Source: Oculina patagonica (lineage: Eukaryota). From it: 64,000 nt of DNA. How positions within the stretch are numbered: the first letter of the stretch is position 1; every line of letters begins with the position of its first letter. Shown piece by piece: positions 32,760-61,611 of the stretch. The notes under the pieces were generated by a model. The model made no database searches. It was not told where the DNA came from and was given only the letters and a program-made list of their open reading frames with translations. The DNA is taken from positions 32,736,001 to 32,800,000 of the forward strand of contig NC_135765.1 in the NCBI RefSeq assembly GCF_052425735.1, given 5' to 3'. A program made the translations under genes and the position numbers.

Positions 32760-33718
32760 TTAGTAGTCGCCAGTTTTCCTGATGGTGACTTCAATATACT
32801 TGATACCAACTCTTTCTTTTTTGCTACTTTTATAAACCTCAAGAGTAAGACCTTTGCTAAGCAACAGTCGCTTACTGTACTTGGCCGTCTTAATGAAGCC
32901 ATGCGCAGTGACGCACGAGCCCCATGGCTTATCCAGCTTAATAATGAAGACGAACTGTTCAGGATAGGAGCTTGTACTTGGATTAGGAGCATCCTTATCA
33001 AGAGCATATCTGTCAGTCACAGTTTTCCCAGACGTGCCGTTAAAGCCATAACAGGGATAATTAGTGCGATAACTCCATTTATCAACCGTTTCAAAGCCAA
33101 TGAAGTTGGTTCCGTCCGACACTCCATATCTGATATCACTGTCGCTCGCTTGTCCGATGCTGACGTCATTTGCTACTGTTATTTCAACGGTCAGCGGAAT
33201 TCCATCTGCCAAGACACCATTGGCCACCAAGGGAACTTTTAGCAGGGCCGCATTGGCGTTTGAGCCTGCGTTGAACGTTATCTGCTCAGCGAGTGTGGAA
33301 CGATTGCTAAAGAGGTAAGACGCATGTGATTCGAGCCACAAGGGTGTCATGTAAAACTCTTTAAATGTCGCCTGTTTGTAATAAATAAAGCAGTGATGTT
33401 ATGTTCTTTTATGTGTTGTTTATCGATGGTTCTCTTAGACAATGGATCGGACCATATTCGTATTCTCGGTATTGGACTGGAACTAGCTTGCAGTGGAGGC
33501 TGATGCGGGGGAATATAATTAAAAAGAGCTTCATGTCATTTTTGAAAAGATTACCCTCCATTGCAAGCTAGTTCCAGTACAATACCGAGAAAACGAATAT
33601 GGTCTATTGAGTCATTTCTTAGCAATAATTTTATGCAAGATATCAAACTTCAGTTACAAGACGTACAAGGTTCAAGACCGCAAAGCACACTTTCGGTTTG
33701 AGTAAAGTTAATTGACAC

Positions 33719-33756
<38 letters not shown>

Positions 33757-34360
33757 TAATAAATCAATCAATCTTTATATCGAGGGTGACACGTAATAGT
33801 CTTTCAACTAATAAATTTGTGGCTTTCTTAAACATAATAATAGTTAAAAATCTAGTATAAACAATAATCTAATTAATTATATATTAATATTGATTTTATT
33901 TGAAGTCGACCAGTACTATATATAGCAATACATAGCAAATGTTTATAAAAATGGACCATTATTTTTAGGTAAAGTTTTCTACGATACAACAATTTATATT
34001 AAGCTAGTTAAGCAACAGACAATTCCACACTATTCTGCCGTGGTTTACGTTTTATACCTTATAAGGGTAGTCGCTGTACGCATGCCCTTCTCTAGATTCA
34101 TAATCCCATGTGTGCGTGTACCTATCAGCGTCGTTCAGCTCGCAAATCAAATCTTTAAACCGGAAGTTGATGCTTTTACATCGCGGATCGTCGGAACATT
34201 TGACCAAGCAGTCACCCAAACCATCTGAACTTCCACTTGAAATCACGTGAGCAGACAGGTACTTTCCTGTTATAGACCGTACTGCTTTGCTACATTGTTG
34301 AGACGCGACTGATGTAATAGATATCACAAGCAAGCACATTAATCCTACCAATTCGGTCAT
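32760..34360 (-). CDS. Secreted PAN/Apple + unassigned ~200-aa domain protein, copy A, 304 aa; exons 34360-34058, 33371-32760
   Basis: Signal peptide MTELVGLMCLLVISITSVAS; PAN pattern C-x3-C...RCKSINF...CELN; phase-0 splice AAG|GTATA ... AAACAG|GCG in frame with MTPLWLE. Confidence 0.88.
33450..33608. mobile_element. Palindromic MITE in intron of copy A
   Basis: GACCATATTCGTATTCTCGGTATTGGACTGGAACTAGCTTGCAGTGGAGG pairs with CCTCCATTGCAAGCTAGTTCCAGTACAATACCGAGAAAACGAATATGGTC. Confidence 0.75.
33720..33772. repeat. (CAAT)n microsatellite, probable retroelement tail
   Basis: About 12 imperfect CAAT units; same motif as the tail at 16449-16516. Confidence 0.8.
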
Positions 34361-37300
34361 GTCTAAGAATTACCTGACAAAAAATAGGCAAACAAATTTA
34401 ACCTTTGGATGCAGGCGCTTGTGTATTATGTTTCTGTTTCCCCACTAAAATGCTCTATCTTTATGCTTCATTTTTCCCACTAGAATGCTCAGTCTCCTCC
34501 AAAAAAGTCACTAATATAAAATTGTTTGAATAATGTTCGTTATACAGAGGCTTTTTTTTTAAATAATTCCAAATTTTTAACAGGGTATTAACACTAACAT
34601 ATATGTATTAACAAACATGTTTGCTTTTGACTTTTGAAGCCTAAAACTGCTGACTTCTCCTCAGGCTTCACTTAGCTGGTCGTAGTTTTGCATTTGACTG
34701 TTATTTTCTCTAAAACAAAGTCAATTTTCCGGAAAAATGCCACTAAAATGCTTGAATAATGCATAATGCTTTTGCCTCACTCAAATGCTTGGGTAAATGG
34801 TCTTCGAGTTTTTTTTTCACAGTTTTGAGAAGGTGATTTACTCTGCGATACGGAAACTTTCGGTAGTTGTTTATTCATTCCTCGCGGAAGTTTTAATGTA
34901 TGAATTGTGTGTCGTTGATTTTTGACGTTGCCATTACATGAAGGTTTTGCAAATATCGTCTCTCTTAACAAGGTAACTTCAGCTTTAGACATGTAAATAA
35001 GATAAGATATGTGTTTCTGAACACATTAAAGAAACTGAACAAACTTAAGACAAGCTGTAAATGTAGCTATTGTTTATCTTAGACCCACTTATATTCTTAT
35101 ATTTTTATCTTTTTATCCTTGTGCGTTTTTTTCCTATATTCCTTATCACTTGATCCTTTGATTTAAACTTATTATACAGTATGGGGTAAGGGAAGGGGGG
35201 TTGTGTTAGTTTTGTCCTTTTTATCATTCAATTTTTAATGGGTGGGATAAATTTTATATACTTTTAATAGCATATACTTTAGTGTATTTTTATTTGAAGT
35301 CCTACGTTTTATACATGAGCCTCTGGCTTGGACATTAAGGGAGATCTCGTCCCACGTATGGACATTAAAATTGTATCGTATTGTTATTGTATTACTCTTG
35401 TCACTTGTTTTAACATCGTTTCTAATTTTCAAAGTTGTTTTCTTTACCTTTTGTTTGTGGGATTTTCCTATAGATAAAAATACGTGGGCTCGTGTGTGAA
35501 TTTCTGCAGCTGCTCACCAAATTCGTATTCTTCAGGTTTTTCTGCACATCACGTTTTAATTACATTAATTTTCATTCTCTTTCGCAAAACTACCTAAATA
35601 CTGAGATCGATTCTTGATCTTTTAAACCAAGTAAAACTAAAATAAAAACACACGAGGCAGTGTACTATATACAGATGTAAACGAATTGAGTATTCTAGAC
35701 ATCACCAGACCAGATCTAGATATAACCAGGTGATAACAGGGTTATTACATTGACGGGAAGTCGGATAAATATGGTGGAAAATTAATTGTTTAATTAACGA
35801 TGACATTTTCAATTTTATATTTACGTTTAATATTTTCATTTTGCACATTATGTCAGCTTGAAATTTTAAGCTTAAAATTTTAAATAACCAGCTTCAAAAT
35901 GTCACCTCGTTGAAGTTGTGCTTCCTGGCGAACAAAGTTTTGATTTAAAGTCTCGGAACTGTTCTGTATGCTCAGCACGTGTTGCAAGAAATGGTGTGCC
36001 GTTTTGATATTTTCAGTTGTCTCATTCCTCCTTATTTGTTATTTAAGCCAAAAAGTAAAAGAAAGTACACCAATGAAATTAATTAAATGTTTTCTTTTTG
36101 ATTATTCAAAGCTAAGGCCTATATTTTTTAACATCGAAGAGAGTCAATAAGTACAACGGACATATAATTTATTAAGAGGGCAAAAGACCGTCTGCGGCTT
36201 CTATAGCGTTTCCTTTTTAGAGCTTAAAGTCGTATATGCAGTGGATTTTTGATTTCTCAAACTAAACCGAAAGTCGCTTGTTTCTCTAAGATTTGTTCTA
36301 TACTTAAGACACTAAAGTATATCAAGTCTGCAAGAGTAATATTTAAACCCCAATTTATCGTACAAAAAGGTTGAACGTAATCGACAATTGAAAATTTTGA
36401 AAAGACTGAAAAAAAAAATGAATCCCCCATTCTCCTTCCATTAAGTTGAAATCGTCCTTCGTCAAACTATTTTTCTACTTACCCTTAGCTACTGAGAGCT
36501 CGAGAGGCCATGCTTCTGCCGTCCTTATCTTAAAACTGAAGAAAAACAACTTTGCTGCCCTTATGTATATTTAAGGATAATTATTTCAAGGCTTTAAGAC
36601 GTGGTTGAATCTCATCTTAGTGACGTTTGATATTACTGTCATTATGTTTCCGTTTATAATGTTTACGAGGTGAAATTTGCTTTACACATATGGCTTTGCA
36701 TAATGTCGGTGAAGTTTGAGCGCGCAAAAAATCTATAAGGTAACGATGTAACTTTCGTTGTAGATCTTATGATGTTATTAAATTAATAGATAACTGGCTA
36801 TGATAACCTGCGATCAGGCATTCTTTTTTTCGCGGCGGAAGGAAAAAAAACGCCTGAGAACAGGTTAGCGCGCAGACGTCTCTCCAATGAGGAGGCGGTT
36901 GCACTCAGGCTATTATTAGAGCTTTTAATTACAGAGTTTGAGTGGCAGTTGAAACGGGGTTTTTCAATGGTGGTATTACAAGGAATAAATCTTCGTACGC
37001 TTCCTGGCACTTGTTTGTTGAAGTAATTGAGGAAAAGCGTTTTTTTAAGTGCCAAGTTCAAATTTAAATTTAAACTTTTATCCAAAAATGAAGGGTAAAA
37101 CCCGAAACGGTTGCAGCGGATTTGAATTCGAATTTGAACTTGGCACTTTTAAAACAACACTTTTCCTCAATTATTCACATGGTCTAACGTTACTATAACT
37201 GTGGGCTCTCTCTAATCGGAGAGATAGGAGAGCTTTCAAAATAAACGGAAAGTCTATAAAATGGTTATTTAACCCGTAAGGTTTTTCGAAATTTTGAAAA

Positions 37301-38797
37301 AAAAGATTTACTCTACAAAGCTGAAACTTAGCTGTTCATCCGTCCCTTGTTTGACATTTGACGTTGCCATGGAAACGAAACACAAAAGCACGATTTGTTT
37401 ATTTTAACATTCCACGTGCATTCTGTTTTGATTTTGCATCAGATTCCGTTATTTTGTGACTTTCTAAGGAAATGTTGAAATCCAAGATGGCGGCTCTATG
37501 ACGTCACAGCCAATTAAAATAAGGTCATCTTGTAGAGTAAGCTACGGGCTTTCTACTCAGTGCAAAATAATTTCGCTGCGCCTTAATTGAACGAAAACTT
37601 CGGGGAGGGGTTCAAGTCCCGGCGATCTTTTTACCCTTGGAAACTTTAAAGCTGTATTACAATAAGCAACTGCGCAAAATGACTTAAAATTTGTAAAAAA
37701 AAAAAGAAGTCAGTTATAATTACAGCTGTTTGCTTGACAGGTTTCCTCGCTTCTCCATTTCCTTTGACATCAAATTCGGAGGCACTAGCAGTTATTTTCA
37801 GCATTATCATATAAACATATTACTCTAGTAGAAAAATCTTTTAAAACATCGTTTTGCAAAGGACTCTGATATCGTTTTACAGGCGTACTTTAACAACATG
37901 CAAACGAGAGCGAAGAAGAACAGCAAAGTGAGACTTCCTTTTAGTTTTTATACCTTGTTTCCTCTTTCTTCTTTGAATCAATATAATTAGTCGCCGTAGA
38001 AAACAAATTGTAGATGCTAATGCGATAAAATATTATGGAATTACAGATATACATTATGCGATTTGTGGTAAATTTTTCCCGCTTTATTATGTCAATAGCA
38101 ACAAGACTCACGAATATGAAGGTCTTATTTTTAAGTATTAATAATAAAACCTACTGACATTTACGTACCTGAACTTTAGCGGCTATTTTATTAACAAAAT
38201 GTGCTGGTCGGTCAAGATCTTGTTTTGAGGAGTGTGGATCGCTCCGCGGTACGAATACATTCATTAAAGCTTGCAGCAGCTACTACCTTATATAATAAGC
38301 TATTTTCGGAATTTAACTTAAACGTTGAATGCCGACATTCTGTCAGAAAGCTGACAAAAAACCTTAATGGACTAAAAATATTAATATTAATTTTAGTTGT
38401 TCTGTCATCGGGTTAAACTAATAAGGCGTCAGCCTAAAAAAATAGTCGCGATAACGTACCAGCACCTGTAACACTGAAAAAGCGCCCTTAAGTGAGGGTG
38501 AGAGTTTTCTTTTTTAGGCAATCACGTTTTTCTGGATTTCCCTTTCACATTACTTGCAAATGAGCAAGGACGCTACGAAGATGTGTTTTGCGTTTAGGCT
38601 CCACTGCATTACCATATGTCGAGTCTTGTCAGGTGCTAGTTCTATAGTTTTAATAAAAAAAAAAATGCTTCCCCAAACCGTTTTATCTAATTTCCTTTTT
38701 ACAGTAATTGAGAAAATTCTCGCGCGTATGCGACCAAAGAGTAAAAAGAAACTGACACTTCTAACTGATCAATCCTCAATGTACAGTTGCCACCAGT

Positions 38798-40123
38798 TTA
38801 TCTAAGGGTAACCTTAATATACTTGATACCAACTCTCTCCCTATTGGTACTTTTATAAACCTCAAGAGTAAGACCTTGACTGAGCAACAGTCGCTTCGTA
38901 TATTTTGCCGTCTTGGTAAAGCCTCCGCCATGCGCAGTGAAGCACGAGCCTTGTGGTATGTCCAGCTTAAGAGTGAAGACAAACTGATCGGGGTAGAAGC
39001 TTGCACTTGAAATAGGATCTCTTTTAGCAAAAGGTTGTATGGCCGTAAGGGATGATCCAGAGGTGGCCTGTACCTCATAACAAGGGGAGTGGGTGTCATT
39101 ATTTCTTTTATCTACCGTTTCAAATCCAATAAAACTGGTTCCGTCCGACACGCCATATCTGATATCGCTGTCGTATTTTTCTCCGATGCTGACGTCATTA
39201 GCTACCGTTATTTCAACGGTCAGCGGAGTTGCATCTGTCAAGACACCAGCAGAAACCAAAGGTACTTTTAAAAGGGCAGCGTTTCCAATTGAGCCTGCTT
39301 TGAACGTTATCTGGTCAGCGGTTGTGGTGCGAGAGCTATCGATGTAAGACGCATGCGCTTCAAGCCATAAAGGAGTCATGTAGAGCTGGGTAACTGTGAC
39401 CTGTTTAAATTAAATAGAGTGTGTGATATTGTGTTATTGTATACACAGGTGATATGATATTACAGTCATTATAATATATTGATGGGCTTCTGTCGCTAGT
39501 AATACGTATCTCGCAGGACCTCGCTCAGGCCTCCTACGCAACGTTCGTTTGAATTGTCACGCAATCTTTCCTCCCCAACGAACGACTAAAATAAACCGCT
39601 GTTTCCGTAGACCAATCAAAGCGCCCTTTCAAATCCTGGAAGTGACCCTGAGTGCCAGATGACTAGAGGAAGGATTGCATGGCGAGCCAAAAAGGCGATT
39701 AAAGTAAGCCTAGAGGGCAAACCAAATTTCTATATTTGAAGACCTGACCCTCGAAGAAAATTTGTGGTTGAGAAACTAAAATTAATTGCAAGTTTGCTAG
39801 AGTGTCGATCTTACCTTAACAGCCGGGTAGTCACTGTACGCATGCTTGTCACTAGGTCCATAATCCATTGCGTGCGTGTATATATCGGCGTCGTTCAGTT
39901 CACAGAACAAATCATTAAACCGGAAGTTGATGCTTTTACATCGCGGATCGTCGGAACATTTGAACAAACAATCACCTAAACCATCTGCACTTCCGCTTAT
40001 TATCACGTGACCAGTCAAGTACATTCCTTTTATGGACCGCACAGATTTGCTGCATTTCATAGAAGCACTTGAAGTGACAGCTATGACAAGAAGCCACAGC
40101 AATCCCACCATTATGTAACTCAT
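38798..40123 (-). CDS. Secreted PAN/Apple + unassigned domain protein, copy B, 303 aa; exons 40123-39815, 39400-38798
   Basis: Signal peptide, PAN domain very close to copy A; splice AAG|GTAAG ... AAACAG|GTC in frame. Confidence 0.87.
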
Positions 40124-42213
40124 AAAGTTTATACCTGGTAGAAATTAGAAAAATATTTATTCACTATTTATACTTTGCAACTCGTTTAATATCCTGAATG
40201 GAATCAATATAATCAATACGGACCGAGTAAGTTAATTTAATAAAACTTTAATTACATTGGCTTTTTTACAACACTTCGCTGATAACAAAGCCTTATTTAT
40301 TTTATTTTTATTTTATTTATTAGATTTCCCAACATTACAAAAAATATTTACAACAAAAAAGATAAAATATATAATAATAATAAAAAAATAGTGGGAGGAT
40401 AACAGCAGGGGGAAACTGAATTCCCATGTAAAAGCTGTTATCCTAGATAAAGCTAAAAATTTACAAATAAATTTACTAATGAATAAAATTAAAAAAAAAA
40501 AAATTACGCTAATAACAATTTATCATACTAAGATAAGTTATATGTTCATATTGCTAAAACATTAAATGGCTTAACATTAGCCTTCATCTGTCTTCGGCGG
40601 CAAATATTTCCAAAACTGCTCACACATTAATACATACTTCAAACTTCTTCCGTACCCTAAACCCTGAAAAAAAAACTGTTGATGCATGGATCATAAAAAG
40701 ACTCTTTTACTTTCCATGGTTGACCATATATACAGGGACCGCAGAGCCGGGGGCTAATATTTCCGAAAAAATTAAGACTTACTAAGAGAAGAGTCTCTAA
40801 AGCGGCCCGCTCCAAGTTACTAAACAGTCTCCTCCCCCCCCCCCCCCCCCATTGGAAAAATGCCTCGCGGTCCCTGATATAGCCGAAAAAAAGCTCTCTG
40901 TTCACTGCAAAACTACAGTTTTCTGTTCCTATTAACTGACGTACGAACCAATCAGATTGACTCCCTTTTTTAATATATTCAACTTTTTCTTTGGCAATAT
41001 AATAAAACAGAGATTGGTCATTTACAGTTTGTCACGTTATTACAGTAAAGTGTTCATTATTTTTTTGTCATATTTGCTTTGTTTTATTCTTTAGTCGACT
41101 TTAGCGTTAATTTTTATTACATTTGCGGTTAGTATTTACTTTCCGCATTGATTATTATCACATTTTGAGTTCGAAATTACAAGCCTGAAAACAGCATGTC
41201 ACTCAGAGCTCCTGAGCTTGCCAAGGGTTTCAGATAAAAATGGTTTGATCTCAAGTCTGATATGGAGCAAAAAGAGAGAAAGAGAAAAATATATCAGCAT
41301 TTTAAAGCATTTAAATTATTTATCCCTTTGTCTTTGTATTGATTATGTCTCATTTTTTATAATTATTGGAAATAAAAAAGGTAAGAAAAACCTTTTTTTA
41401 TTTTACAGTAACTGTAAATTGAAATGGAACGGTGAAAAATATTCGATCTTCACTTTACAAGATTTCAGTTGTGTCATTTTATCTTGAAAGTAACGTATAA
41501 CCATACAAATGTGCTGCTTTGAATTTTATACCAAGCATAATTTTCTCCCTCATCCTTTCATAAATAAAAATTCTCAAAGTATTGAAAAATTAAGCTTCAC
41601 GTTCTATGACAACTGATCGCGACTAAAGGTAGCCTGCTGTTTTCAATTCTTGCTTCCATCAGAAAAATGGGAACATTAATTTACTCGTTCACCAAAAATA
41701 GAAACTACTTCACGGACGTGAGAAGGTAGACGAAGGGTGTTTTCGGCAGTCCGACGGGAAAAAAAACTTGATGATTAATTCATCTATTCTCTGATACTAA
41801 CTTCACTTACTTATATGCAGAAAGGCCAAGCTTTTGCCGTTAAATGCTTAATCGGGAAACTAAACAGAAACAGCTATGCTGCAGTCCTTGTTTCACATTT
41901 GCAAGTGAATTTAAGTATTTTGCGGCGACGAGACGGTGTAGCTACTTGAAGTTTCACCAGCTGGTTGAAGCTGGTATTTATGACATTGAAGTTGCAAGCG
42001 GAAACACTGAGATAGACAAATAATAATATTTTTTAATTTTATACTTTAGATTTGTTTATTTTGAATGGCTCCGTAACAATCAATCAGTGAAATTTGGGAG
42101 GGGAATCGGGTGATTGGAAGAAACATAAAGTTGCCAGCGGCGTACATTTTCCCGTTTGAATTGACGCGCGAAGATAAAACAAAAATTCAACAGGAAAAAT
42201 ACGTACAAAGCAA

Positions 42214-42800
42214 ACAATTCTTCGTTAAACGGTCAAGAGAGGGTGTGATCAGAAACGTATTTCTCCTTAAGTATAAATGACGAAACCCAATGTCAAGCAG
42301 GCCCTGGGAATATCAGGCACACACCATTCAAGCTTTTGAACACCGTTTATCCTGGATGGACGGCATTTTTAAGGGGATCGGTTGGGGGAGATCTAAAGGA
42401 AGGAGGAAGTATTTTAATACTCACACCCTCTCTTGACCGTTTAACGCAGAATTGTAAGAGCAGACTTTTATGAACGAAGGGGTTGGGGGGGGGGGGGGGG
42501 AGTTAGAGGATGTGCAAGCAATAACTACAAGAGACATCTACACTATATTCACTTCAGTCCCGCTTTTAGTATGAACGCGTCTTGCTTATCGCCAGGAACA
42601 GGAACAGGAGCGAGTGTTTTTTCTTCTTCGACGGGCGACTTTTCAATGTTGTCGTCGTTGGCAGGATCTGGATCATCGGGACCTTCGCAGTGTTTGCCCA
42701 TTGCTGCGCAATCGTGAATATCCTTCGGTGTTCCGCAACCGGGGCACTTATTTTTGCGTTTTGCTGTTTTCGAGGACATTTCGTTGAGATGAGTGGCTAG
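42214..42800 (-). mobile_element. Probable retrotransposon remnant with short Cys/His ORF (42779-42549)
   Basis: ORF MSSKTAKRKNKCPGC-x6-H-x8-C followed by acidic/Pro linker, ending abruptly; 35-bp inverted repeat 42214-42248/42421-42455; 14-mer GATGGACGGCATTT whose reverse complement recurs at ~46225. Confidence 0.4.
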
Positions 42801-43636: not shown

Positions 43637-43684
43637 TTAAGGTGTTTTTCGTAAAGTCATCTCCAAACTTCGTTTTTTCAGATA

Positions 43685-44997: not shown

Positions 44998-46839
44998 TTA
45001 ACCATCCGTTTTGATAATGGTGATCTTAATGTATTTAATGCCAACTCTCTCTATTGGTTGACTTTTATAAACCTCCAGAGTGAGACCCTGACTGACCAGC
45101 AGTTGTTTTGTGAACTTGGCGGTCTTGATGAATCCTCCGCCATGTGCTGCAAAACACGAGCCCCATTGCTTATCCAGCTTGATGGTGAAGACAAACTGAT
45201 CAGGGTAGAAGCTTGCAATTGCACTTGGAACAATAGTGAACCTATCAAAATACTTTATGGTACTCAGAGTTGCCCCAGACTGCGCTTCCACCCCATAATA
45301 AGGCGCCCATTCACGATAGTTTTTCTTGTCTGGCACTTCGAATCCGATGAAGTTGGTTCCGTCCGATACACCATATCTGATGTCGCTATCAGCGTTAGGC
45401 AAATGCTGACCAATGTTGACGTCATTAGCGACTGTTATTTCAACGGTCAGCGGAGTTCCATCTGCCAAGACACCAGCGGCCACCAAGGGGACTTTTACAA
45501 GGGCCGCGTCACTTATCGAGCCTGCGTTGAATGTCATCTGGTTAGTGGTTGTGTTGCGATTACTATCGATGTAAGACGCATGTGCCTCGAGCCACAAAGG
45601 CGTCATGTAAAACTCTTTAAATATCACCTGTCAATAATAAATAAAAGTTGTTCTCGCGACTATGGTCATGCCCAGTTTCCTCTATGAGACGCTGACTCGT
45701 CTCCAGTCGTATTCATATAGCATGCGGCAAAGGGAGAAACACGCGCGCGAGGTGGGGGAGCAGGGGACGATAGGAAGGAAGAAGGGAAAAAGCGCTCCCT
45801 TTGGTACCCATCTCTCCCTCCGCTGTATCTTTGCCGCGTGCTGTATGAAGACGACTGGGGACGAGTCAGTATGAGACGTGCTCCAGGGCATCATGATAGT
45901 AGTATTCGACAGATAAGCAACATTCCAACTACCACAACTCCCTGCAGGCGCGTGTCATAGAGAAAACTAGGCACTAAGGTATCTTACGATGCGTTAACAT
46001 CAGTTAAAGTAATTAAACCTGGCAGTTACCTAATTAGAAAAAAAAATCTTCTACAATTATTGTTACTGAGAGTGAACTGAAAGCTTTAGTGTTTACCCTC
46101 CGCTCCACCCCCACAACTCCACTTTTGCAGGTAAGTTGGCAAATTTTGTCACTGAAGTGTAGCCTGCTGGGTAAACAGACGGGTCGCAGATCCACTACCG
46201 ATCGACCTGAATAGTAGGGATTCGAAATGCCGTCCATCTTACTTAGCATACCGTATACTCCTGGTTTCCTTCCCTTCTTTGGTGACTCCCGTCTCTTCGT
46301 GGGTTTTTTTTTTATTTTTTAATTTCAAAATACTGCTTTAGCTAAATAAAGTTCTTTTTTTCTCTCGCTAACCGCCCTTTCCTATCCACTTTCCTTACTT
46401 TCCCCTCTTTCCACTAATTAATCTTCTAATACAACCTCGTTTCCAGGGTCTCTCTCTCCCCGCCAGACCCCGGGAACGAAGTTGCTACCTAGCTACGTTT
46501 TTAGCTTACTGATTGTGACCAGAGTGGGTAAAAAATATAACTGACACAGACCTTGACAGGGTAATCACTGTAGAGGTGGTCCTTTTTCAGCACATAATCC
46601 CAGGGGTGCGTGTGTCGATCAGCATCGTTTAGCTCACAAAGCAAGTCACCAAAATGAAAATTGATGCTTTTACAGCGCTGGTCCTTAGAGCATTGGATGT
46701 AGCACATGCCAATATTCTTCACATTTTCCGATGAAATCACGTGATCTTTGAGATAACGTCCCAATACAGTGTAAGTGGATTTGCATTGCTGGGCTGAATC
46801 GACGGCAACGAGAGAGGTCATCAAAAGTGGTAGCCACAT
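44998..46839 (-). CDS. Secreted PAN/Apple + unassigned domain protein, copy C (chimeric), 305 aa; exons 46839-46552, 45627-44998
   Basis: Start MWLPLLMTSLVAVDS after acceptor ATTTCAG; splice AAG|GTCTG ... TTGACAG|GTG in frame. Confidence 0.87.
45692..45869. mobile_element. 178-bp palindromic MITE with 9-bp target-site duplication
   Basis: TATGAGACG (45683-45691) | CTGACTCGTC...GACGAGTCAG | TATGAGACG (45870-45878). Confidence 0.85.
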
Positions 46840-47805: not shown

Positions 47806-50235
47806 AATAATAATAATAATAATATAATAATAATATTAAATATATTTTTATAGCGCCTATCCAGGCCTGCTCTAGGCGCTTTACAAATGTTTAAAAAAAT
47901 ATATATATATATAATAAAATCAATAAAAATTTTGTTAAAATTAGCTGAATAAATCTTAAAATTAAAAATTTGCATTAAAAGTAAAAATCGCTAAGAGTAA
48001 TAAGTTTTAAAAAGAAACGTTTTGAGTTTTGATTTAAAAGAACTTAAATTGTCACACGAGCGGATAAAAACAGGCAAACTGTTCCAAAGTTCAGGCGAGG
48101 AAACAGAAAAAGCTCGAGACCCATACGATTTGAGGTGGAATTTGACAGGGTTGAGACGTGAAGAGTGTGATGATCGGAGGGTTCTTGAGGTTGGTAGTAC
48201 GTTAGCAAATCTTGAATGTAGATAGGAGATTGTTGATGGAGAGCTTTGAAGGTAAGTAGCAGAATCTTGAATTTAATGCGTTCAGAAACAGGAAGCCAGT
48301 TTAGTTCTTTCAGTTTTGGAGTGATGTGGTCGTATTTTCGGGAACAAGTGATAAGTCGAGCAGCGGCGTTCTGAACAGACTGGAGCTTTTTTAAAGCGTA
48401 CTTCGGCACATTATACAAGAGAGAGTTGCAGTGGTCGAGTTTGGACGATACAAAAGCATGGACCAAGATCTCGGTTGTTTTCGTGGATAAGTATTTCCTT
48501 ATACGGGAGATGTTGCGAAGATGATAAGAGGCAGATTTACAAATAGAACTGATATGTGGAAGCATAGTCATGGTTCTGTCAAATATCACACCGATGTTTC
48601 TGGCAAATTGAGATGGCTGAATTATATCTTGATCAAAACGGATTGGAGGTAGAGACTGCTGCGGATTGTGCTTCGAGTAAAGGTAGAGAAGTTCAGTTTT
48701 GTCCTTATTCAGTTTTAGCTTGTTAATAGACATCCACTTGTCAAGATCAGACAAACATTCCTCGATTTTTCCGATTGTATTGGTTAATTCGACATCGTTG
48801 TTTGTTGAAAAAGAGATATATAGCTGAGTATCGTCAGCGTAGAAGTGAAATTGCATTTCGTGATGTCGTAAAATGTCAGCCAGTGGTGCAGTATAAAGTA
48901 AGTACAGGATAGGCCCTAAGACCGAGCCCTGGGGGACTCCACATTTGAGCTCATGAGACTGCGATTTAGTTCCATCGATTAAGGTAAATTGTGTACGGTT
49001 GGTAAGATATGAACGAAACCATTCAAGAGCAGCGCCACAGATTGAAAACTTGGAGTTCAATCTTCCTAGTAGAATGTCGTGATCGACAGTGTCAAAAGCA
49101 GCAGATAGATCCAGTAGCAGGAGTATAACACAGTGACGATCGTCAATGTCACGCAAAATATCATTGTGTACACGTACAAGAGCAGTTTCACAGCTATGAA
49201 GTCGCTTATAGGCTGATTGTAGCGGTTCATTAAGTTGGTTGGTTTCCAGGTAGTCCTGAAGACGTACTGCAACAACTTTTTCGATCATTTTTGAAATGAC
49301 CTTGAGATTTGAGATAGGCCTATAATTACTGAGAATTTCGTGATCCAGTGATGGTTTCTTGAGTAGTGGCAATAAGACGGCAGTTTTTAGAGAAATAGGC
49401 ACATATCCAGATTCCAGGGACAAGTTTACAATCCTACATAGTGTTGGTAGAAGCATGTCAAAGTTTTCTTTTAACAAAACAGCAGGCAGAGGGTCCAGGC
49501 TACAAGACTTAGACGCAACAGTACGTGCAACCTTCGAAAGTTCAATGATTGAAGTAGGTGAAAAGGCGTTCAGCTGACAGTCAAGTGTCGATTTATCTAA
49601 GGTGCAGAAGAGATCAGACGTTACGTTAACTTCGAGTTTACTTCTAATATTGATAATTTTATTTTCGAAGAAAGTAACAAAATTATTGGCTAGTTCTGTA
49701 GCCGAGGAACAGGTCGGAAGACACTTCTCGGGCTTCCTGTGGAGAAGGCGGTCGATGGTGCGAAAAAGGGACTTGTTATTGCTTCCAGCCTCGTCGATAA
49801 GATTGGAGTAATAATCCATTTTTGATTTGAAGATAGTGTTTTTTACAACAAGGCACTGTTCGACGTAGGATTGGTAATCAGACGCAAGACCGGAACGACG
49901 CCAGCACCGTTCACGTTTGCGACAAATGGTTTTCTGCTCCCTGATTTCATTATTATACCAAGAAGCATGAGGTCTTAGGGTGATAGTCCTTGTGCGCAAG
50001 GGTGCATGTTTATCCAGAATCGAGGATAAAACAGAATCATACTGATCGCAAAGCTCCGTAATATCTGACGAAGGTGATTTGACCAAAGAAGATGAGTTGA
50101 TATCTTGGCATAGCTTATGTAGATTGACATTGCAAAGCTTTCGTGACGTAAGGACTTGTTTCAGATTAGGTGGTCTTTCAATAGCCAAGTTACAATGGAC
50201 AGCAAAGTGATCGGAGATAGCAGGGTCATGGATTG

Positions 50236-50236
<1 letters not shown>
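47806..50236 (-). mobile_element. 5'-truncated L2/CR1-group LINE: end of APE endonuclease + reverse transcriptase, one frameshift near 48189
   Basis: SDHF (endonuclease end), [34 protein letters not shown] (~48830-48841). C-terminus SRTLRS...LWNSLP...FKSKLKTFLF continues in another frame. 3' stem-loop AGCGCCTA...TAGGCGCT then (ATT)n tail. Confidence 0.93.
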
Positions 50237-50286
<50 letters not shown>

Positions 50287-50528
50287 GGAATTTCCAGTGG
50301 GATCTTCCACAAGGTGGCTCTTCTTGATCCCACTGTTTCCAGATCGAATTGGAATTTGGAAGTGTTGGTTTTGTGGAGGGAGGAAAACGGGAGAACCCGG
50401 AGAAAAACCCTCGGAGCAAGGACGAGAACCAACAACAAACTCAACCCACATATGGTTCCGGGCCAGAATCGAACCCGGGCCACATTGGTGGGAGGCGAGC
50501 GCTCTCACCACTGCGCCATTCCTGCTCA
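50237..50528 (-). mobile_element. Full-length tRNA-derived SINE with V-domain-like core and (TAT)n tail
   Basis: A box TGGCGCAGTGG, B box GGTTCGATTC, core GGGTTTTTCTCCGGGTTCTCCCGTTTTCCTCCC, ~16 TAT units. Confidence 0.88.
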
Positions 50529-51633: not shown

Positions 51634-51950
51634 TAAAACTTTCTAGAAAATGAATCTACTTGTGTTGCTTACATAAACAGAAATCAATTTCTTTCTCTCC
51701 TGCATGCTGAACAATATTTTATTCATGATCTTTTAATTTGTTTCTCATATAACTTCATAGCATGACTGCTAATTAAAATGAGAGTGTTTTGATTAAGAGC
51801 CACTGACTCAGTGGAAGTTGTTCTAATCAAACCTAGTGCCAGGCTTTTGTTTCGAGTAGAAAAGAACACAAAAGAAAAAGCAAACATAAAAGGAAACGAT
51901 AAAAGATACTTAATCAATGTGTTTTCGCGCGTGAAGATGGGAGATGTTTT

Positions 51951-51993
<43 letters not shown>

Positions 51994-53985: not shown

Positions 53986-55709
53986 CTATTCATCCGTTTT
54001 CATAATGGTGACCTTAATAAGCTTGATACCAACGCGCTCATTTCTGACCCCTTTGTAAACCTCCAGTGCGAGGCCTTGGCTGATCAACAGTTGCTTACTG
54101 TACTCTACGGAATTAGTATAGCCTTTGCCATGCGCAGTGAAGCACGAGCCCCATGGCTGATCCAGCTTGATAGTGAAGACGAACTGATCTTGATAAGGGC
54201 TGTCCCTTGGAATAAGTGAAGTCATTTTGTTCAAATATTTAAAGGAAGAAAAGGTTCCTCCAGACATCGCCTGTGACCCGGTACAAGGAGCCCATTTGTT
54301 GTAGTTTTCTGGGTCAACCGCTTCAAATCCGATGAAATCTGTTCCGTCAGACAAGCCAAAGTTGGGATCGCTGTCTTCGTTTTGTCCGATGCTGGCGTCA
54401 ACAGCTACTGTTATTTCAACGGTCAGCGGAGTATTGTCTGCCAAGACACCAGCGGCTACCAAAGGAACTCTTAAAAGACGCTCGAAGTGTGTTGGGCCTG
54501 CATTAAATGTCATCTGGTCAGTTGTCGTGGACCGAGCACTATTAATGTGCGATGCATTGGCCTCCAGCCATGATGGCGTCATGACGTATTCTTTAAATGG
54601 CACCTGTCAATAACAAATATAGAGGCTCTTAGTAATGCTTCTCTTCCTGGATGAGACGCTACTCATTTGCAAGTAACCCTCCTGTATTTCACCATGTTGC
54701 CTTAGCACAAGGTACTGTGCATGAGAGAGTAATTTGTTTTTTTCAAGAGCAAAGCACAGGTACGTTCGCTAGAGATTAAGCCCGAATTTCAATCCGGAGT
54801 CCGGTGTTCGGTCCGGTGCCCACTTAGGCATATTATCAAATTGTCTCATCGGTCCAAGAGAGTGTCTTATGCATAAAAGTTAAAGGGACTATGTCACGGA
54901 TTTTACCAGATTTTGAATGACAGCCAAAATTTATATATATTTGTGTCGCAGGAAACCTAGAAATAATAGTCCATTTTTTATTAAAAACTGCTATATTAGA
55001 GCACTGAAACTGGTAACGAAAATGTTTGGCTCAGATGGAAACGGATTGCAACTTGAAAAAGTCAGGCTTACGTTTTCAAGTTGTCTCCGCGCGTCATCAA
55101 ACAATCGATATTTATAGCCGAAGTTTGATTTCTATCCGGAAATTAAGGTTATATCTTCCTATAGATGTTCAAAAATAATGTTTTTTATGGGTTTAGTTGC
55201 CTTCCACTAACTTCAGAACAGTTTAGACCAAAAATCTGCGCAATCCCCGTGACATCGCTCCTTAAATGTGTCAGAAAAAAATGTCTGATTCCACTACTAG
55301 ACACTCATTGAAAATGACATTGCGAGGCAGGTTATTATAAAAGTTTTGTGTTCCTCGGCGCAATGTACATTTAGTGCAGTTATGAAATTAGTGAATAACG
55401 GACACAAACCTTGACAGGGTAATCACTGTAGATGTGGTCCTTTTTCAGCACATAATCCCAGGGGTGCGTGTATCGATCAGCATCGTTCAGCTCACACAGC
55501 AAGTTTCCAATGAGGAAATTGATGCTTTTACAGCGCTGATCTTTGGAGCAACGGACGTAGCACATACCAATATTCTTCACATTTTCCGATGATATCACGT
55601 GATTTTTGAGAAAACGTCCCAATACAGAGTAGGTGGATTTGCCTTTTTGGCATTGTTTGGTTGAATGGACCACAACGAGCGACGACATCAGCAGTGGCAG
55701 CCAAAACAT
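53986..55709 (-). CDS. Secreted PAN/Apple + unassigned domain protein, copy D, 305 aa; exons 55709-55410, 54603-53986
   Basis: Signal MFWLPLLMSSLVVVHS; splice AAG|GTTTG ... TTGACAG|GTG in frame. Confidence 0.88.
54884..55261. mobile_element. TTAA-flanked Kolobok-like element in intron of copy D
   Basis: TTAA|AGGGACTATGTCACGG...CCGTGACATCGCTCC|TTAA; absent from the paralogous intron of copy E (~61155). Confidence 0.75.
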
Positions 55710-55797
55710 TTCTGAAACAAGTAGAAAAAGTCGTTGTGAGTCCGGCTGTGAAACTTTGATAGGAAATTTGGTGGGAAGGCGGCTCGAGTGTCAACTA

Positions 55798-56117
55798 CCG
55801 TAAAATTCCGGTTATAAGCCCTCCCGCTTATAAGCCCCCCCCCCCCCGGTTATAGGCCCATCTATCTGGAAGCAAAAAAATACATCCGGTTATAAGCCCT
55901 TCCAGATATAAGCCCCCCTCTGCCGGATGACAGCATTGAACAGAGCTAAATGTTGCTTTATTATGCGTTTTTAACGTAGAAACGTATTTCGATCAACACT
56001 CCCGTGGCTCGTTCCGAAACGTTTTTTTATTCCGCTTATAAGCCCTCCCGGATATAAGCCCCTCCGCTTTTAAGCCCACCCAAAACCCCTTACGAAGTTG
56101 TAACCGGAATTTTACGG
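55798..56117. mobile_element. TA-flanked pogo/Tc1-type MITE with TATAAGCCC subrepeats
   Basis: TA|CCGTAAAATTCCGGTTA...TAACCGGAATTTTACGG|TA; empty site at ~61690 in unit E. Confidence 0.88.
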
Positions 56118-57407
56118 TATGTCATACTGACGAGAAGCCAAAGACAGTGGGAACTGGTGTCATGTCAGGATCCACTGAAGAAGTTCGGCTACAACACGTA
56201 CAGCTGCCATTTTTAATAAAACAAAACCTTTTTTACCTTCGTTTACTTGATACTGAGCAGAAAACAGTTTCACCGAGCATAATAAAACTAAAAAATAACA
56301 GATGAAAGTAGCTAGCTAAGTTTGCTTTAACTTCTTAATGTTTTTGCAGAACTGACATAATTTTTATAAACTACAACAAGATGATCGTTATCAGCAACAA
56401 TCATTATTGAAACCTACGACTGCCATAAAATAAAATGCTCTGACTTTTCCCTGACTTTGAATAGCATATTCGAAAACTTCATCAGTGAGTGACCAATTTC
56501 TTGACTCTTCTTCGACCTTGAAAACTGTTTTTTTTTCTTTTTCTTTTTCCAGACTTGTGACAATACCGTACAATTTATCCCAAGCCTGCATCAGCACCGC
56601 AGGGCCCGATGAAATGAAAACTAAAGTACAGAATTCCTTTTTACCTACCTGATTGGAGTCTTCACTATCCAGAGGTCACTGAGAGGTATTAAGTTGAGTA
56701 ACTAAGGTGCTAACACGCTGCCTAATACTTTGCACACTTCTACAACTTTTACAATGAGTTAAATTGGGCCAAAAGAGTATTGAAAAAACGATTAAATATT
56801 AAAACTACCTATAGAGGAAAAATCGTCTTCATGGGTTTTGTTTATGTTGTATATTGTTTTGTTTTTGTTAACAGAAGTTTCGAGAATAGGTAATAAAGCT
56901 CTTCCATTTATATGAAAGCAAGATTTAATAAAAGCTTCAGTGATCGGAGTAGTTAATTTAACTCGGTGAAACGTTAACAAAGCAGTTACCGGCTAATTGT
57001 GAAACACAATGCCAAATTTTTAATTTGTTTCGAGAAGAAAAGAACACAGTGTGTCATTGAAGTTGTAAAGGTTGGTGATCAAATATTTTTTGCTTAAACC
57101 AACCCACCTTAAAAATCTTTATATCATCACCATCATAAAAATCTTTCAGTGAAGAATGCGTTTTTACAATCTATAGTGATGTTTTCATAGCCTGGGAACA
57201 GGCTCCCCACTCCCTAGTGGTGTATAGAAAAAAAGAAACCCGCTAGCGGAGCGAGCCTAGCTCGGCTTTCCGAGCTCGCCCAGCTGGCGGGATAAGGAAT
57301 GGTTTCTGTGGTTTTCAGTCCTTGAAAAGGGTATCCTTTTCGCCCCTTTTGCATTATGATCGCGGTGTGAAACTATGGGGCTGGTTTCCTTTAAGCCGTA
57401 TAATGAG

Positions 57408-57888
57408 GGGGAGGGGGGGGGGGGTTGAATAGGTTCGTGGATCGACGGATTTTGCCTTCAATAGCTCACGCGCGGATTGTGGATTTTTGTGATACACTGA
57501 GCGGATTCGCGGATTTCGAAAATACAGCGGATCGCGGATTAGCTGAGAATTTTGGCCCGGATTCCGAACATTTCATGTCAAGAAGTTCGGATCGTGGATA
57601 CTAAACGAAGCGCGGGTCACTTTGGTTGGTCTTTGTTGACGAAATTGTCGCAAAAACAAGCAATGAAACATAACTAGCTTCTTAAAAAATTGGCATATGA
57701 AGACAACTTCTATAATGGGCTCCTGCTTCTACTGTCAGTTGCAGTGAAACAATACCGCACAATTTGAACACAGTTTTCAAATAATGTGGATTCGGATTTG
57801 AACGAAAAAAGTGGCGGATTGACGGATTCGGCCAAAAAATGGCACGGATCGGTGGATTATATTAGCGTACCCCTATTCACCCGCTCCC
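57408..57888. mobile_element. MITE, inverted copy of 6243-6823
   Basis: GGGGGTTGAATAGG...CCTATTCACCC termini; internal reverse-complement match to 6270-6790. Confidence 0.7.
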
Positions 57889-57891
57889 TTT

Positions 57892-58174
57892 AGAGGGGTT
57901 TTCACTTGAGTGTCGAAAGTTAATTGCGTTTGCTTTGGTTTCGCATTGCTACGCTTAGTGATTGGTTTAAAATTCTCGCGCCACTTTCTCAGCCAATCAG
58001 AAGTAAAACCAAAACCAATCGTGACTCGCGCGCGCACGATTTCCCGCGCTTCGTGCCGGTTACATGTATTTGCTTTGAGTTTTGATTGGTTCACTGAATT
58101 GTCTGTGTTTTTTTTGATTGGCCAGAGTAATTACTTTGGTTCTGGTTTTACGACACTCAATTGAAAACTACTCT
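57892..58174. mobile_element. MITE rich in CCAAT/ATTGG motifs (PIF/Harbinger-like)
   Basis: TAGAGGGGTTTTCACTTGAGTGTCG ... CGACACTCAATTGAAAACTACTCTA terminal inverted repeats. Confidence 0.75.
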
Positions 58175-59637
58175 ATTATTATTATTGTTTTTCAATAATA
58201 GGCTCAGCAGTTACTGAGCGGAGTGGTGAAACAGATGTAAAAGATGATTTGTTTCACATATTTAGTTGCCCTGCGTAGCTGGCAGTTTCGTTGGTGCAAC
58301 ACAAGGCCCCTTGCAGCTTCGCTGCTCGTTTTCCCCTCGTTTTCCACCAATGAAAACCGCCAGGTACCCAGACCCATATACATGTATGTTTACGAACGCG
58401 GGTAAAATAACCGTTCTCATATTTCTTTTTGCGGACTCCCGACGTAATGCCTGAATGCGTTTGATCAAATCGCGATGAATCACGGTACCGTAATAAACAA
58501 AAAATATGATTTTTTACGTAAAAGAGTCTGTTTGAGTGATGCCAAACGTGTAATGAAGTAGGAAATAATTTAATCTATCTATAGTGCATGTAAAGTGCTG
58601 ACAAAAGCAGCGCCCCAACCTCTTACTGAATAAGTTTATTTGTGCGAATCAGAAACTCTTCATTTCGTGGCTTAGTCAAGCAGGTTTGCATCTTTTATTT
58701 ATTTACAAGCAAATTTACATCATAAACTTAAAATAACGTTTACGCGCCGTTACATTGAATAAAAAACGTACTTTTTACTGTAACTCAAGCTTTAGTTAAT
58801 GCTGCCAAAGAATCGAAGACAGCTTTCACATGTACTTTCAGGAAACCGGTTTGCTTGAAGTATACTAATTTATTCTAAGGTGCAAAATTAAAATTGAGTG
58901 CAAAAAAGTTCAGATTTATAAGTCGTTCAGAGCCCGTCCGAAAATCACCAGAAAACTTACCGAAACAATGCAATTGACCACGTAAGGGCTCTAAACGTTG
59001 TCAATGATTACAGAAAAATTTTTTCGAATATTACCCAAGGATTTTTGAAAGCCTTCCTTTCTAGTTCAAATTGGAATAAGACAGCACTTGTAAACTTATT
59101 ATAGAACACAATGTACCCTGGGTCCTGGGATATTTCGGCATTATATTTTATACTCACTATCACGTGATCATTTATATTTTCAGACTTATATGATTGACTG
59201 AATAAAATTGATAATTACAATGCGATCATGCAAAACCCAATACACCACAGTGCTTTCAAATTTGCAAGAGAACTAGAAGCTAGTTTACAAGTAAGAAATC
59301 ATTTGTGGTTTCATCTTTCTAGCAACTTTTCATTGCAAGTCTGTTGCAAACTTTGATGAGAACAAATATATGGTGCGACACAAGTTTGAACTATATAACT
59401 ACTAAACTTAAAACGGAGCACAATATGACTATACAAGATAATTTAGTAATAACGACAAAACGTTAAGCTCTTTCTGACAGCTGAATTCTCGAGTGCTATA
59501 AATAGATGAATTCTCGAATGCTATTAATAGATAAAAAATTGTTCGCCGGAAGGAGTTTTGTTGGTAACTACGTATTGTGTACAAAAATGAAGAAGAAAAA
59601 TTGACAAGTTGTCATCATCATCGATTAAAACTGTTGT

Positions 59638-61611
59638 CTATTCATCCGTTTTCATAATAGTGACCTTAATGAACTTGATGCCGAGTCGTTCTTCTTTTGT
59701 GCCTTTGTAAACCTCCAGTGCGAGGCCTTGGCTGACCATCAGTTGCTTGCTGTACTCTACGGAATTAGTATAGCCTCCCCCATGCGCAGTAAAGCACGAG
59801 CCCCATGGCTGATCCAGCTGGAAGGTAAAGCCAAACTGATCTGGAAAGTGGCTGTCCTTTGGAATAAGCGCAGTATGTGCGTTTATATATTCACGGGAAG
59901 CAATGGCTTCTCCAGAGGTCGCCTCCGATCCAGTACAAGGAGCCCATCTGAAATAGTTAGCTTGGTCAACCGTTTCGAATCCAATAAAATTAGTTCCGTC
60001 AGACAAGCCATAATTGGGATCGCTGTTACTCTCTTGTCCGATGCTGGCGTCAACAGCTACCGTTATCTCAACGGTCAGCGGAGTATTGTCTGCCAAGACA
60101 CCAGCGGCCACCAAAGGAACTTTTAAAAGACGCTCGAATTTTATTGAGCCTGCATTGAACGTCATCTGGTCAGTTGTCATGGACCGAGCACTACTTATGT
60201 CTGCTGCATTCGTCTCCAGCCATGATGGCGTCATGACGTATTCTCTAAATGGTACCTGTAAATGACAAATAAATAGAGGATAGTAAATAATAAAGATGGT
60301 AAATTTCAAGCTCGGTGATAAATAGTGAAGAATTTATTCAACATGACTCGAGCGTGGGACAAAGAAAAAATCTGAGTCCCCGACGGGAATCGAACCCATG
60401 GCCTCCCAGATACCGGTTGGGCGTTCTAACCAACTGAGCTACGAGAGACTCGTTGTGAGCTTAGGCCATTTGCTAGGTTGATATGTGACACGCGTCCTGC
60501 ATACTGCTAGGATCAGCAATGTCGAAATCATCAAATGTGTAGTAAATAATAAAGATGGTAAATTTCAAGCTCGGTGATAAATAGTGAAGAGAGGACAATA
60601 CATGGTTGCGCGGAAATACGAAATTTAACTTCGAGTGTTTAAATCGATATCTCACGGACTAATCACGAGGTTTTTGACGATTTTCCGAAGATTTCCGACC
60701 CTTTTTTGAAGGTTTCCGAAGATTTTTAATATGTTGTCCGAAGGTCGTACGAATGTTTCCAAACATTTTCCGAATTTTTCCGAAAAGTTGAGAAGATTTC
60801 CGAAGATTGCCGAGGAAGATCCGAAGGTGTTTCGACTCAATATCGATAAACTTTGACATGGCAAACTCGTCAGCAAACGTGTCGAAATCGATATCTTCAC
60901 ATGTGAACGATATCATATTTTTTACAGTGTAAAGATATGATTTTTCACAGCGAGAGAAATCCTAGTAATTCACTCTAGTTTATTAAAGAGACTCCTAGTA
61001 ATACTTCTCTTCCTGGATAAGACATAAGTCATTTGCAAGTTCTCCTTCAGTATTTTTCCATGTTGCATCTTACTGTGCGTGTGACGGTAAATTATCTTTC
61101 TCAAGAACAAAGCTCGGGCCGGGGTAGTTCGCTTGGGATTCATCCCGAATTTTTGATCAATGTGTCAGAAAAAATGTCTGAACTATATTTTTTCGCAACT
61201 CCCACTATCATACACTCTTAAAAAAATGACGAGGCAGTTTATTAAACATGTTGTGTTCCTTGGCGCAATGTGTAATTGGGACAGGAAAATAGTGAAAACA
61301 CAGACACAAACCTTGACAGGGTAATCAATGTAGGAATGGTCCTTTTTCAGCACATAATCCCAGGGGTGCGTGTGTCGATCAGCATCGTTCAGCTCACAAG
61401 GCAAGTCTCCAATGAGGAAATTGATGCTCTTACAGCGCTGATCCATAGAGCATTGCATGTAGCACATACCAATATTCTTCACATTTTCTGATGAAATCAC
61501 GTGACCTTTGAGATAACGTCCCCATATAGTGACGGTGGATTTGTCTTTTTGGCATTGTTTGGTTGAATGGACCACGACGAGCGACGACATAACCAGTGGC
61601 AGCCAAAACAT
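59638..61611 (-). CDS. Secreted PAN/Apple + unassigned domain protein, copy E, 305 aa; exons 61611-61312, 60255-59638
   Basis: Signal MFWLPLVMSSLVVVHS; splice AAG|GTTTG ... TTTACAG|GTA in frame. Confidence 0.88.
60281..60590 (-). mobile_element. tRNA-containing element with 51-bp terminal direct repeats (259-bp period)
   Basis: Perfect repeat 60281-60331 / 60540-60590; tRNA-like segment 60449-60376 (TAGCTCAGTTGG, GGTTCGATTCC); GAGGA duplicated on both flanks. Confidence 0.85.
60591..60985. mobile_element. Interspersed repeat with TTTCCGAAGA subrepeats, host of the tRNA-containing element
   Basis: Absent from the paralogous intron of copy D (54615-54630); multiple (T)TTCCGAA(G) motifs; begins ATAGAGGA at ~60273. 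Confidence 0.65.

Follow-up and report, generated by a model that had tools for sequence, protein, structure and literature searches.

What do five related coding sequences, arranged in tandem in a stony coral genome, encode, and what follows from the concentration of their differences in five short patches? The sequences (copies A to E) lie in a 64,000-nucleotide stretch of the Oculina patagonica genome (NC_135765.1, positions 32,736,001 to 32,800,000), the whole of which we call the window. An initial annotation, made from the sequence alone, proposed that the patches form one ligand-binding face under diversifying selection, carried by a jelly-roll similar to those of concanavalin A (ConA) and L-type lectins. 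Corals have no adaptive immunity, yet they must distinguish symbionts, food, and pathogens. We favor, with moderate confidence, the view that the five paralogs are secreted proteins headed by a PAN/Apple domain and followed by a ConA-like domain whose freely changing loops form a lectin-like recognition end.

Results

Five tandem two-exon genes encode a PAN/Apple domain and an unannotated domain

The window is eukaryotic in character, with sparse open reading frames (ORFs) and a G+C content of 33 to 45%. The five ORFs, all on the minus strand (32760 to 33350, 38798 to 39379, 44998 to 45627, 53986 to 54603, and 59638 to 60309 for A to E, respectively), align over approximately 200 residues, with 56 to 70% identity to copy A. 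These frames are not whole genes; each is the second and last exon of a two-exon gene. Self-comparison of the window revealed a second conserved block approximately 0.7 to 1.3 kb upstream of every A to E ORF, the translation of which begins with a signal peptide followed by a cysteine-rich segment. PAN_1 (PF00024) matched the protein of gene A (P0001) and exon 1 of genes A, D, and E at 31.8 to 37.9 bits, compared with a cutoff of 21.4. Each gene product consists of a signal peptide and a PAN/Apple domain, encoded by exon 1, and a domain of approximately 200 amino acids (aa) without a Pfam match, encoded by exon 2. The exon junctions have AAG/GT donors and CAG/G acceptors in phase 0.

Exon 1 of gene A (34058 to 34360; this and all other exons are on the minus strand) encodes 101 aa, comprising the signal peptide and the PAN/Apple domain (PF00024 PAN_1, E = 1.5e-8, 34.8 bits), and ends at an AAG/GT donor. 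Exon 2 (32763 to 33371), delimited by the ORF, the alignment, and a phase 0 CAG/G acceptor, encodes the 203 aa of the lectin-fold domain (residues 102 to 304 of P0001) and is followed by the stop codon at 32760 to 32762. This exon is 100% identical to the NCBI "uncharacterized protein LOC144664313" (304 aa), which carries PF00024, and the predicted spliced products of genes A and B are identical to NCBI models P0001 and P0024, respectively. In gene B, the exon for the signal peptide and PAN/Apple domain (39815 to 40111) was placed by its translation, its splice donor, and the NCBI model, and the exon for the 200-aa lectin-fold domain (38801 to 39400) was placed by the ORF and the alignment and matches P0024. 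Gene C has a PAN/Apple exon at 46552 to 46839, recognized by self-comparison and translation, and a 209-aa lectin-fold exon at 45001 to 45627, which the ORF and the alignment support and which carries a 3-residue insertion in the second variable patch. The lectin-fold exons of genes D (53989 to 54603) and E (59641 to 60255), likewise defined by ORF and alignment, each encode 205 aa. Their first exons, at 55410 to 55709 in gene D (PAN_1 E = 8e-9) and at 61312 to 61611 in gene E (PAN_1 E = 1.6e-9), both encode a signal peptide and a PAN/Apple domain; that of gene E falls outside the range of the initial annotation (32760 to 60255).

Splicing was observed for gene D. In a contig from the public run X1, position 54601 is joined to 55408 (cut +2), and the 806 bases left out have the ends CT..AC; this corresponds exactly to the predicted GT..AG intron of 806 nt on the minus strand (54604 to 55409), which contains a high-copy repeat. 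Both exons are covered by X1 contigs. X1 depth drops to zero at the intron flanks and rises to thousands of reads over 54810 to 55327. Depth in the thousands was also seen upstream of exon 1, at 55772 to 55900; the two intervals are high-copy repeats, separate from gene D.

We also detected a second A to E array 72.7 kb away (G000:C8:32841926-32869019, loci L002 to L006). Its D and E domain exons are identical to those in the window, and its C, A, and B domain exons differ by 2, 6, and 20 bases, respectively; either the segment was duplicated very recently, or the array is a haplotype that was left uncollapsed. Gene C and NCBI model P0025 differ at one residue (A in the window, T in the model), and the model has a short additional 5' exon. 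Because the T occurs in the duplicate copy C' (L004), P0025 was probably annotated on C'.

Two of the copies are unusual. Copy B (38798 to 39379) is five residues shorter at its C terminus than its paralogs and has Q for the conserved W of the WGSC motif and E for a conserved G (CYE versus CYG), positions at which its near-duplicate B' has R and G; copy B may be drifting. Copy C (44998 to 46839) is a mosaic, with a D/E-like PAN exon (approximately 85% identical to D and E) and a lectin exon nearer to A and B (73% versus 69% at the DNA level). Judged from these identities, copy C is a chimera and the paralogs recombine.

The unannotated domain adopts a ConA-like fold

Pfam searches with the five copies returned no family at E ≤ 1, including no match to the legume and L-type lectin families (PF00139 and PF03388). 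With 55 family members, the only Pfam matches were single-member chance matches (E of at least 0.04) to unrelated families, among them no lectin, hydrolase, or lyase. Profile searches of the PDB with 5-row and 55-row alignments gave nothing meaningful (beta-glycosidases at E = 2.3 in the one case and then none).

The fold was accessible through structure prediction. An AlphaFold2 model of the copy A domain, built after an alignment of 55 diverse relatives, is a 14-strand beta-sandwich with a predicted local distance difference test (pLDDT) score of 95.7 and a predicted template modeling (pTM) score of 0.92. The best structural matches were two mycobacteriophage receptor-binding domains (VIA Z scores of 13.9 and 13.8), followed by the carbohydrate-binding module (CBM) CBM2 of phage J-1 (12.9), peanut lectin (1ciw; 12.8, with 183 residues aligned at a root mean square deviation of 3.7), the lectin domain of galactocerebrosidase (12.3), the sialic-acid-binding lectin domain of a Vibrio sialidase (12.1), and ERGIC-53 (11.7). 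A Z score of at least 8 was reached by 118 PDB representatives, and the best 50 of these 118 (Z down to 9.4) are all beta-sandwich modules of the ConA-like kind, including lectins, CBMs, glycoside hydrolase family 16 (GH16), polysaccharide lyase family 7 (PL7), C-terminal domains of GH32/43, the thrombospondin (TSP) C-terminal domain, and B30.2/SPRY. Foldseek searches of the PDB, AlphaFold clusters, Swiss-Prot, and the ESM Atlas agree with this result; legume lectins and ERGIC-53 top the Swiss-Prot list, and galectin-8 also ranked high, with legume lectins, in the PDB and Swiss-Prot. Nearly all of the best fold matches are sugar-binding modules. At the level of the fold, the jelly-roll guess of the initial annotation was correct.

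A B30.2/SPRY identity, which had been our first guess from the layout of the protein, was set aside; this fold appears only at Z 9.4, under the lectin matches. The feature leads from the ESM Atlas (PelX_N, DUF6645, and 3keto-disac_hyd) were weak, and they fit the fold class without showing kinship.

The domain is lectin-fold but lies outside the legume-lectin sequence family. With legume and L-type lectins (peanut lectin and ERGIC-53/VIP36) it shares the beta-sandwich over nearly its whole length, but it has no detectable sequence similarity to them (5 to 12% identity in structural alignments), is approximately 30 residues shorter, and is fused to PAN/Apple. The best fold matches, the baseplate receptor domains of Siphoviridae (the C-terminal domain of TM4 gp23, the Douge baseplate protein, and the CBM2 of the phage J-1 Dit protein; 177 to 188 residues aligned), are stand-alone ligand-binding modules on a larger scaffold, as the coral domain may be. 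Unlike it, they are viral and bind bacterial cell walls, and at 5 to 11% identity, common descent beyond the fold is not evidenced.

Variation is concentrated in five patches on a conserved framework

The strings that the initial annotation quoted for the five patches are all present in A to E exactly as written. From the alignment and the AlphaFold2 model, each patch of copy A could be assigned to a structural element (minus strand; residues numbered within the domain). Patch 1, which follows [N/K]AG and reads SNAN, SIGN, SISD, PTHF, and SIKF in the five copies, occupies residues 37 to 40 (33252 to 33263) in the loop between strands 3 and 4. Patch 2, after IG (QAS, EKY, QHLPNA, QNE, and QES), is found at residues 74 to 76 (33144 to 33152) in the loop between strands 5 and 6, directly before a conserved D-S-D. 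Patch 3 (KWSYRTNY and its counterparts KRNNDTHS, KKNYREWA, PENYNKWA, and QANYFRWA) directly follows the invariant D97 and covers residues 98 to 105 (33057 to 33080) in the loop between strands 7 and 8. Patch 4, the approximately 20 aa after SG, spans residues 116 to 135 (32967 to 33026), covering strand 9 and the long loop that leads to strand 10; it is variable in length and is modeled with a pLDDT of 84 to 87. Patch 5, after YK[S/G] (SKK, TNR, QPI, VRN, and TKE), lies at residues 183 to 185 (32817 to 32825) in the hairpin of strands 13 and 14, directly before a conserved E186-R.

The picture of a nearly constant framework with clustered differences held up well. At least three different residues occur in 33 of 44 patch columns, compared with 23 of 167 columns elsewhere (Fisher p ~1e-14), and a run-length permutation test that was blind to the earlier patch boundaries also found clustering (p ~5e-5). 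Even the close pairs differ strongly in the patches, as had been claimed: patch versus framework dN is 0.58 versus 0.13 for A and B and 0.53 versus 0.07 for D and E. In 44 additional paralogs, drawn from other clusters in the genome, the variation falls in the same five regions.

Other positions barely change. A17, D86, D97, P106, G151, G158, and E186 are nearly invariant in 55 diverse members, and in 34 members, bacterial ones included, D97 is invariant and D79 (the second D of D-S-D) nearly so; D79, D86, D97, E186, G151, and G158 are kept from bacteria to corals. The PC ... GSC cysteines, kept over the same range, likely form a disulfide pair. Legume lectins have a conserved set of Ca2+/Mn2+ ligands (E-x-D-x-Y/F-x-N ... 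D ... H), located on the loop that follows the central strand, and a cis Ala-Asp in loop A, and their acidic motif is E-x-D-x-Y-x-N. The motif of the coral domain is spaced differently (E94-x-x-D97-x-x-N100-Y101), and E94 varies across the family, with no conservation beyond the coral subfamily.

The 14 sites with the fastest replacement rates are 39, 40, 75, 76, 96, 99, 102, 103, 104, 121, 123, 126, 127, and 185. By strand order in the AlphaFold model, 12 of them fall in loops, all in the loops 3-4, 5-6, 7-8, 9-10, and 13-14, which have one strand parity; the six loops of opposite parity contain none. The remaining two, 121 and 123, alternate at the end of strand 9, beside the 9-10 loop. Five loops drawn at random from thirteen would share one parity with a probability of approximately 0.016. 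In an all-antiparallel sandwich, loops of the same parity exit at the same end, and because all fast loop sites share one parity, the variable loops would lie at one end. D79, D97, and E186 are in loops of the fast-site parity, and D86 occupies a tight turn at the opposite end. The model thus suggests that variable loops encircle a core of conserved acidic residues at one end. With respect to the single face proposed in the initial annotation, the variable sites do not appear to be scattered, judged by parity (12 of 12 fast loop sites are of one parity), and the face itself is suggested by topology, through strand order.

The family is large in O. patagonica and patchily distributed elsewhere

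The genome contains at least 86 matches to the domain; each occupies a single exon, and most have an open frame. They form tandem clusters on at least five chromosome-scale contigs, one of which has approximately 30 copies within 0.5 Mb and another a divergent cluster. Since most matches keep open frames and the framework has an omega (ratio of replacement to silent rates) of 0.2 to 0.4, the genes are maintained. Some members have a short Cys-rich N terminus in place of PAN (P0031, P0057, and P0110).

Named relatives were found in Acropora, Montipora, and Porites and in the sponge Dysidea avara (P0302). There are also a few bacterial relatives. P0265 (locus L053) is a stand-alone gene of 235 aa on a gene-dense contig, which a neighboring gene placed among the betaproteobacteria. 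P0189, from a Logan contig, is a 6,153-aa protein with RTX, cadherin-like, Big_9, HYR, and PKD domains and three copies of the domain; it is adhesin-like, and such modules bind ligands in proteins of that kind. A sample of 404 (3 + 401) genomes from the betaproteobacterial class contained no match to the domain, a contig scan with P0265 as the query yielded no relative, and a profile search based on distant members retrieved no more than 8 proteins. Bacterial members are rare in what was searched, and no direction of transfer can be inferred.

The patches evolve at close to the silent rate

We regard as possible, though doubtful, the explanation put forward in the initial annotation, by which the five loops are under diversifying (positive) selection, as in immune-type repertoires, and surround a Ca2+-dependent sugar site that corresponds to the one in legume lectins. 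Selection was analyzed in 49 distinct full-length paralogs of this genome, using a codon alignment, a tree, and our own GY94/F3x4 site-likelihood program. An M8-like test with a single silent rate (the assumption of the M7 versus M8 comparison suggested with the initial annotation) gave twice the log-likelihood difference (2dlnL) as ~171, with 6.6% of sites in a class of omega ~2.7, and the sites it called are the 14 fast sites, all in or beside the five patches. Allowing silent-rate variation (SRV) improved the fit by a further 130. When the M8-like test was applied to 48 null data sets simulated with omega ≤ 1 and the fitted silent-rate variation, 2dlnL averaged 153 and reached 240 at most. 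Because null simulations with variable silent rates reproduce it, the M8-like result carries no weight, and we rejected it as evidence of selection.

The SRV-aware test for omega > 1 retained 17% of the weight at omega ~1.36, with a 2dlnL of 6.81 that was reached in 8% of the null data sets (bootstrap p ~0.08). Per site, 88 of 203 codons are purifying, and site 39 alone is nominally faster in replacement than in silent changes (beta > alpha, p = 0.0076); no site is positive after correction for 203 tests. Because the paralogs recombine, as the apparent chimerism of copy C indicates, tree-based site tests are less trustworthy, and recombination would inflate them further.

We also made a tree-free comparison of 17 phylogenetically independent sister pairs, in which pN/pS was 1.09 for the patches (bootstrap confidence interval, 0.82 to 1.44) and 0.37 for the framework. 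In the sister pairs from outside the window's cluster, which are an independent check of patches defined on A to E, the values were 1.03 and 0.38. The patches therefore evolve approximately neutrally, with a relative rate three to five times that of the framework. There is some room for selection in these averages: patch 1 has a pN/pS of 2.75, patch omega exceeds 1 in 10 of the 13 sister pairs with a finite estimate, three more pairs have patch replacements and no silent changes, and because a mean near 1 includes conserved positions, some patch sites would be above 1. The patches of A and A' and those of B and B' differ in eight places altogether, each time by a replacement and never by a silent change. 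Some of the sites may be under diversifying selection, but the tests do not demonstrate it. The motif spacing, which is unlike that of legume lectins, and the variability of E94 weigh against the sugar-site half of the proposal.

A pooled patch omega indistinguishable from 1 could also mean that the patches are unconstrained surface loops drifting neutrally among redundant paralogs, with the function elsewhere (in the concave sheet or the D86 turn) or with the domain acting as a scaffold. Massive recent duplication would supply the redundancy, and the patches hold the indels and the least confident part of the model. We consider this explanation rather unlikely: neutral drift should leave both ends of the sandwich variable, but the variation is confined to one parity and the six loops of the other are conserved (mean beta of 0.14 to 0.71), the invariant acidic residues share loops with the variable sites, and the open frames and constrained framework of most of the 86 matches point to maintained genes.

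Very unlikely is an enzyme of the ConA-like glucanase/lyase type (GH16, PL7, or DUF1080 3-keto-disaccharide hydrolases), with D79, D97, and E186 catalytic and the loops shaping a substrate cleft, for although the fold matches with Z of 10 to 12 include GH16, PL7, GH43/GH32 accessory domains, and DUF1080 and four acidic residues hardly vary between bacteria and corals, the GH16 catalytic motif E-x-D-x(x)-E was looked for and is absent from the domain, as is any ExDxxE-type strand motif, only D97 of the pair E94..D97 is conserved beyond the coral subfamily, no glycoside hydrolase or other hydrolase or lyase hidden Markov model matched, the best fold matches are noncatalytic binding modules, and 86 paralogs with free loops would be unusual for an enzyme.

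Neighboring features

Directly downstream of gene A, an open frame of 444 aa (30149 to 31483, minus strand) encodes a transporter of the major-facilitator type (MFS_1_like, E = 1e-57). The spacer between genes C and D is lengthened by a retrotransposon insertion, seen as an ORF of 791 aa (48044 to 50419, minus strand) with a reverse-transcriptase domain (RVT_1, E = 6e-34). The 209-aa ORF antisense to exon 2 of copy C (45058 to 45687, plus strand), the frame of which is also open in the duplicate L004, is a mirror ORF over a real gene, without support of its own. Two kinds of repeats were detected as well. Direct repeats at 19648 to 21793 have offsets that are multiples of approximately 306 bases and 77 to 87% identity, and they lie within sequence of strong GC and AT skew. 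A 240-base repeat occurs at 3827 to 4056 and, 56 kb away and 85% identical, at 60330 to 60568 in the intron of gene E, directly upstream of exon 2; it is probably a dispersed element.

Discussion

We propose that the A to E genes encode variable recognition proteins, a role that would suit a lectin-type fold with fast-changing loops. Exon 1 provides the signal peptide and a PAN/Apple domain, the latter perhaps serving as a second contact or binding module or in oligomerization, and exon 2 provides a 14-strand ConA-like sandwich whose strands and whose residues D79, D86, D97, and E186 are held fixed. Five loops at the same end, free to change at approximately the silent-site rate, would surround the conserved acidic pocket, which may hold a metal, and together form the ligand-binding end. 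Gene duplication could then have generated a repertoire of differing loop chemistries across at least 86 paralogs. We speculate that glycans on microbial or symbiont surfaces are among the ligands, which would make recognition of such surfaces a plausible role.

Several observations weigh against this reading. Neither Pfam nor the PDB profile searches found a sequence link to any lectin family, and in the Foldseek and VIA matches glycoside hydrolases and lyases share the same fold. The single variable end is suggested by strand parity in a predicted model, and long loops (10 to 15 residues) could break that parity. An omega of approximately 1 is what unconstrained loops without a binding role would give. 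Finally, no reads from the gene D exons were present in three polyA RNA runs (X5 to X7; single-end, labeled "OTHER PolyA"), a null result that says little, as these runs may sample transcript ends only.

The specificity of legume lectins is set by their loops A to D. In these lectins and in the coral domain, a conserved acidic core is flanked by variable loops, and by analogy the loops of the coral domain could set specificity. Millectin C-type lectins, tachylectin-2, and FREPs are likewise secreted, multicopy, variable putative recognition proteins, but they differ in fold (C-type lectin, beta-propeller, and fibrinogen-like, respectively). The coral tachylectin-2 study reports positive selection (PMC2880987); for the A to E family, the tests do not demonstrate it.

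Neither the fold nor the broad concept of a variable lectin-like repertoire is new. The literature that we searched (PAN and corals, ConA-like and L-type lectins in cnidarians, and the Oculina genome) contained no description of this particular family. The family is unannotated, and there appears to be no earlier account of its fusion to PAN, of the number of copies, or of its patchy occurrence in corals, a sponge, and rare bacteria. Catalogues of coral recognition genes rest on annotated domains, and because this family has no Pfam match, lectin counts based on InterPro domains (as in PMC10236652) would miss it.

The locus also bears on how selection is assessed in such families. An M7/M8-type test on tandem paralogs can yield a spectacular but spurious signal, as it did here, and because of this, claims of diversifying selection in similar families need to model silent-rate variation and handle recombination.

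A broader and quite unlikely possibility is that sessile marine animals (stony corals and at least one sponge) possess an undescribed lectin-fold repertoire of approximately a hundred tandem paralogs per genome, in which microbes or symbionts drive loop diversity around an acidic, metal-dependent pocket and the module is shared with rare bacterial adhesins. If this were true, the sharing would raise the possibility that the module passed between bacteria and animal hosts in the distant past. With at least 86 copies, a lectin fold, and loops that change at the silent rate, the family is a concrete candidate, open to testing, for a repertoire of variable binding proteins in stony corals and, through homology, in a sponge.

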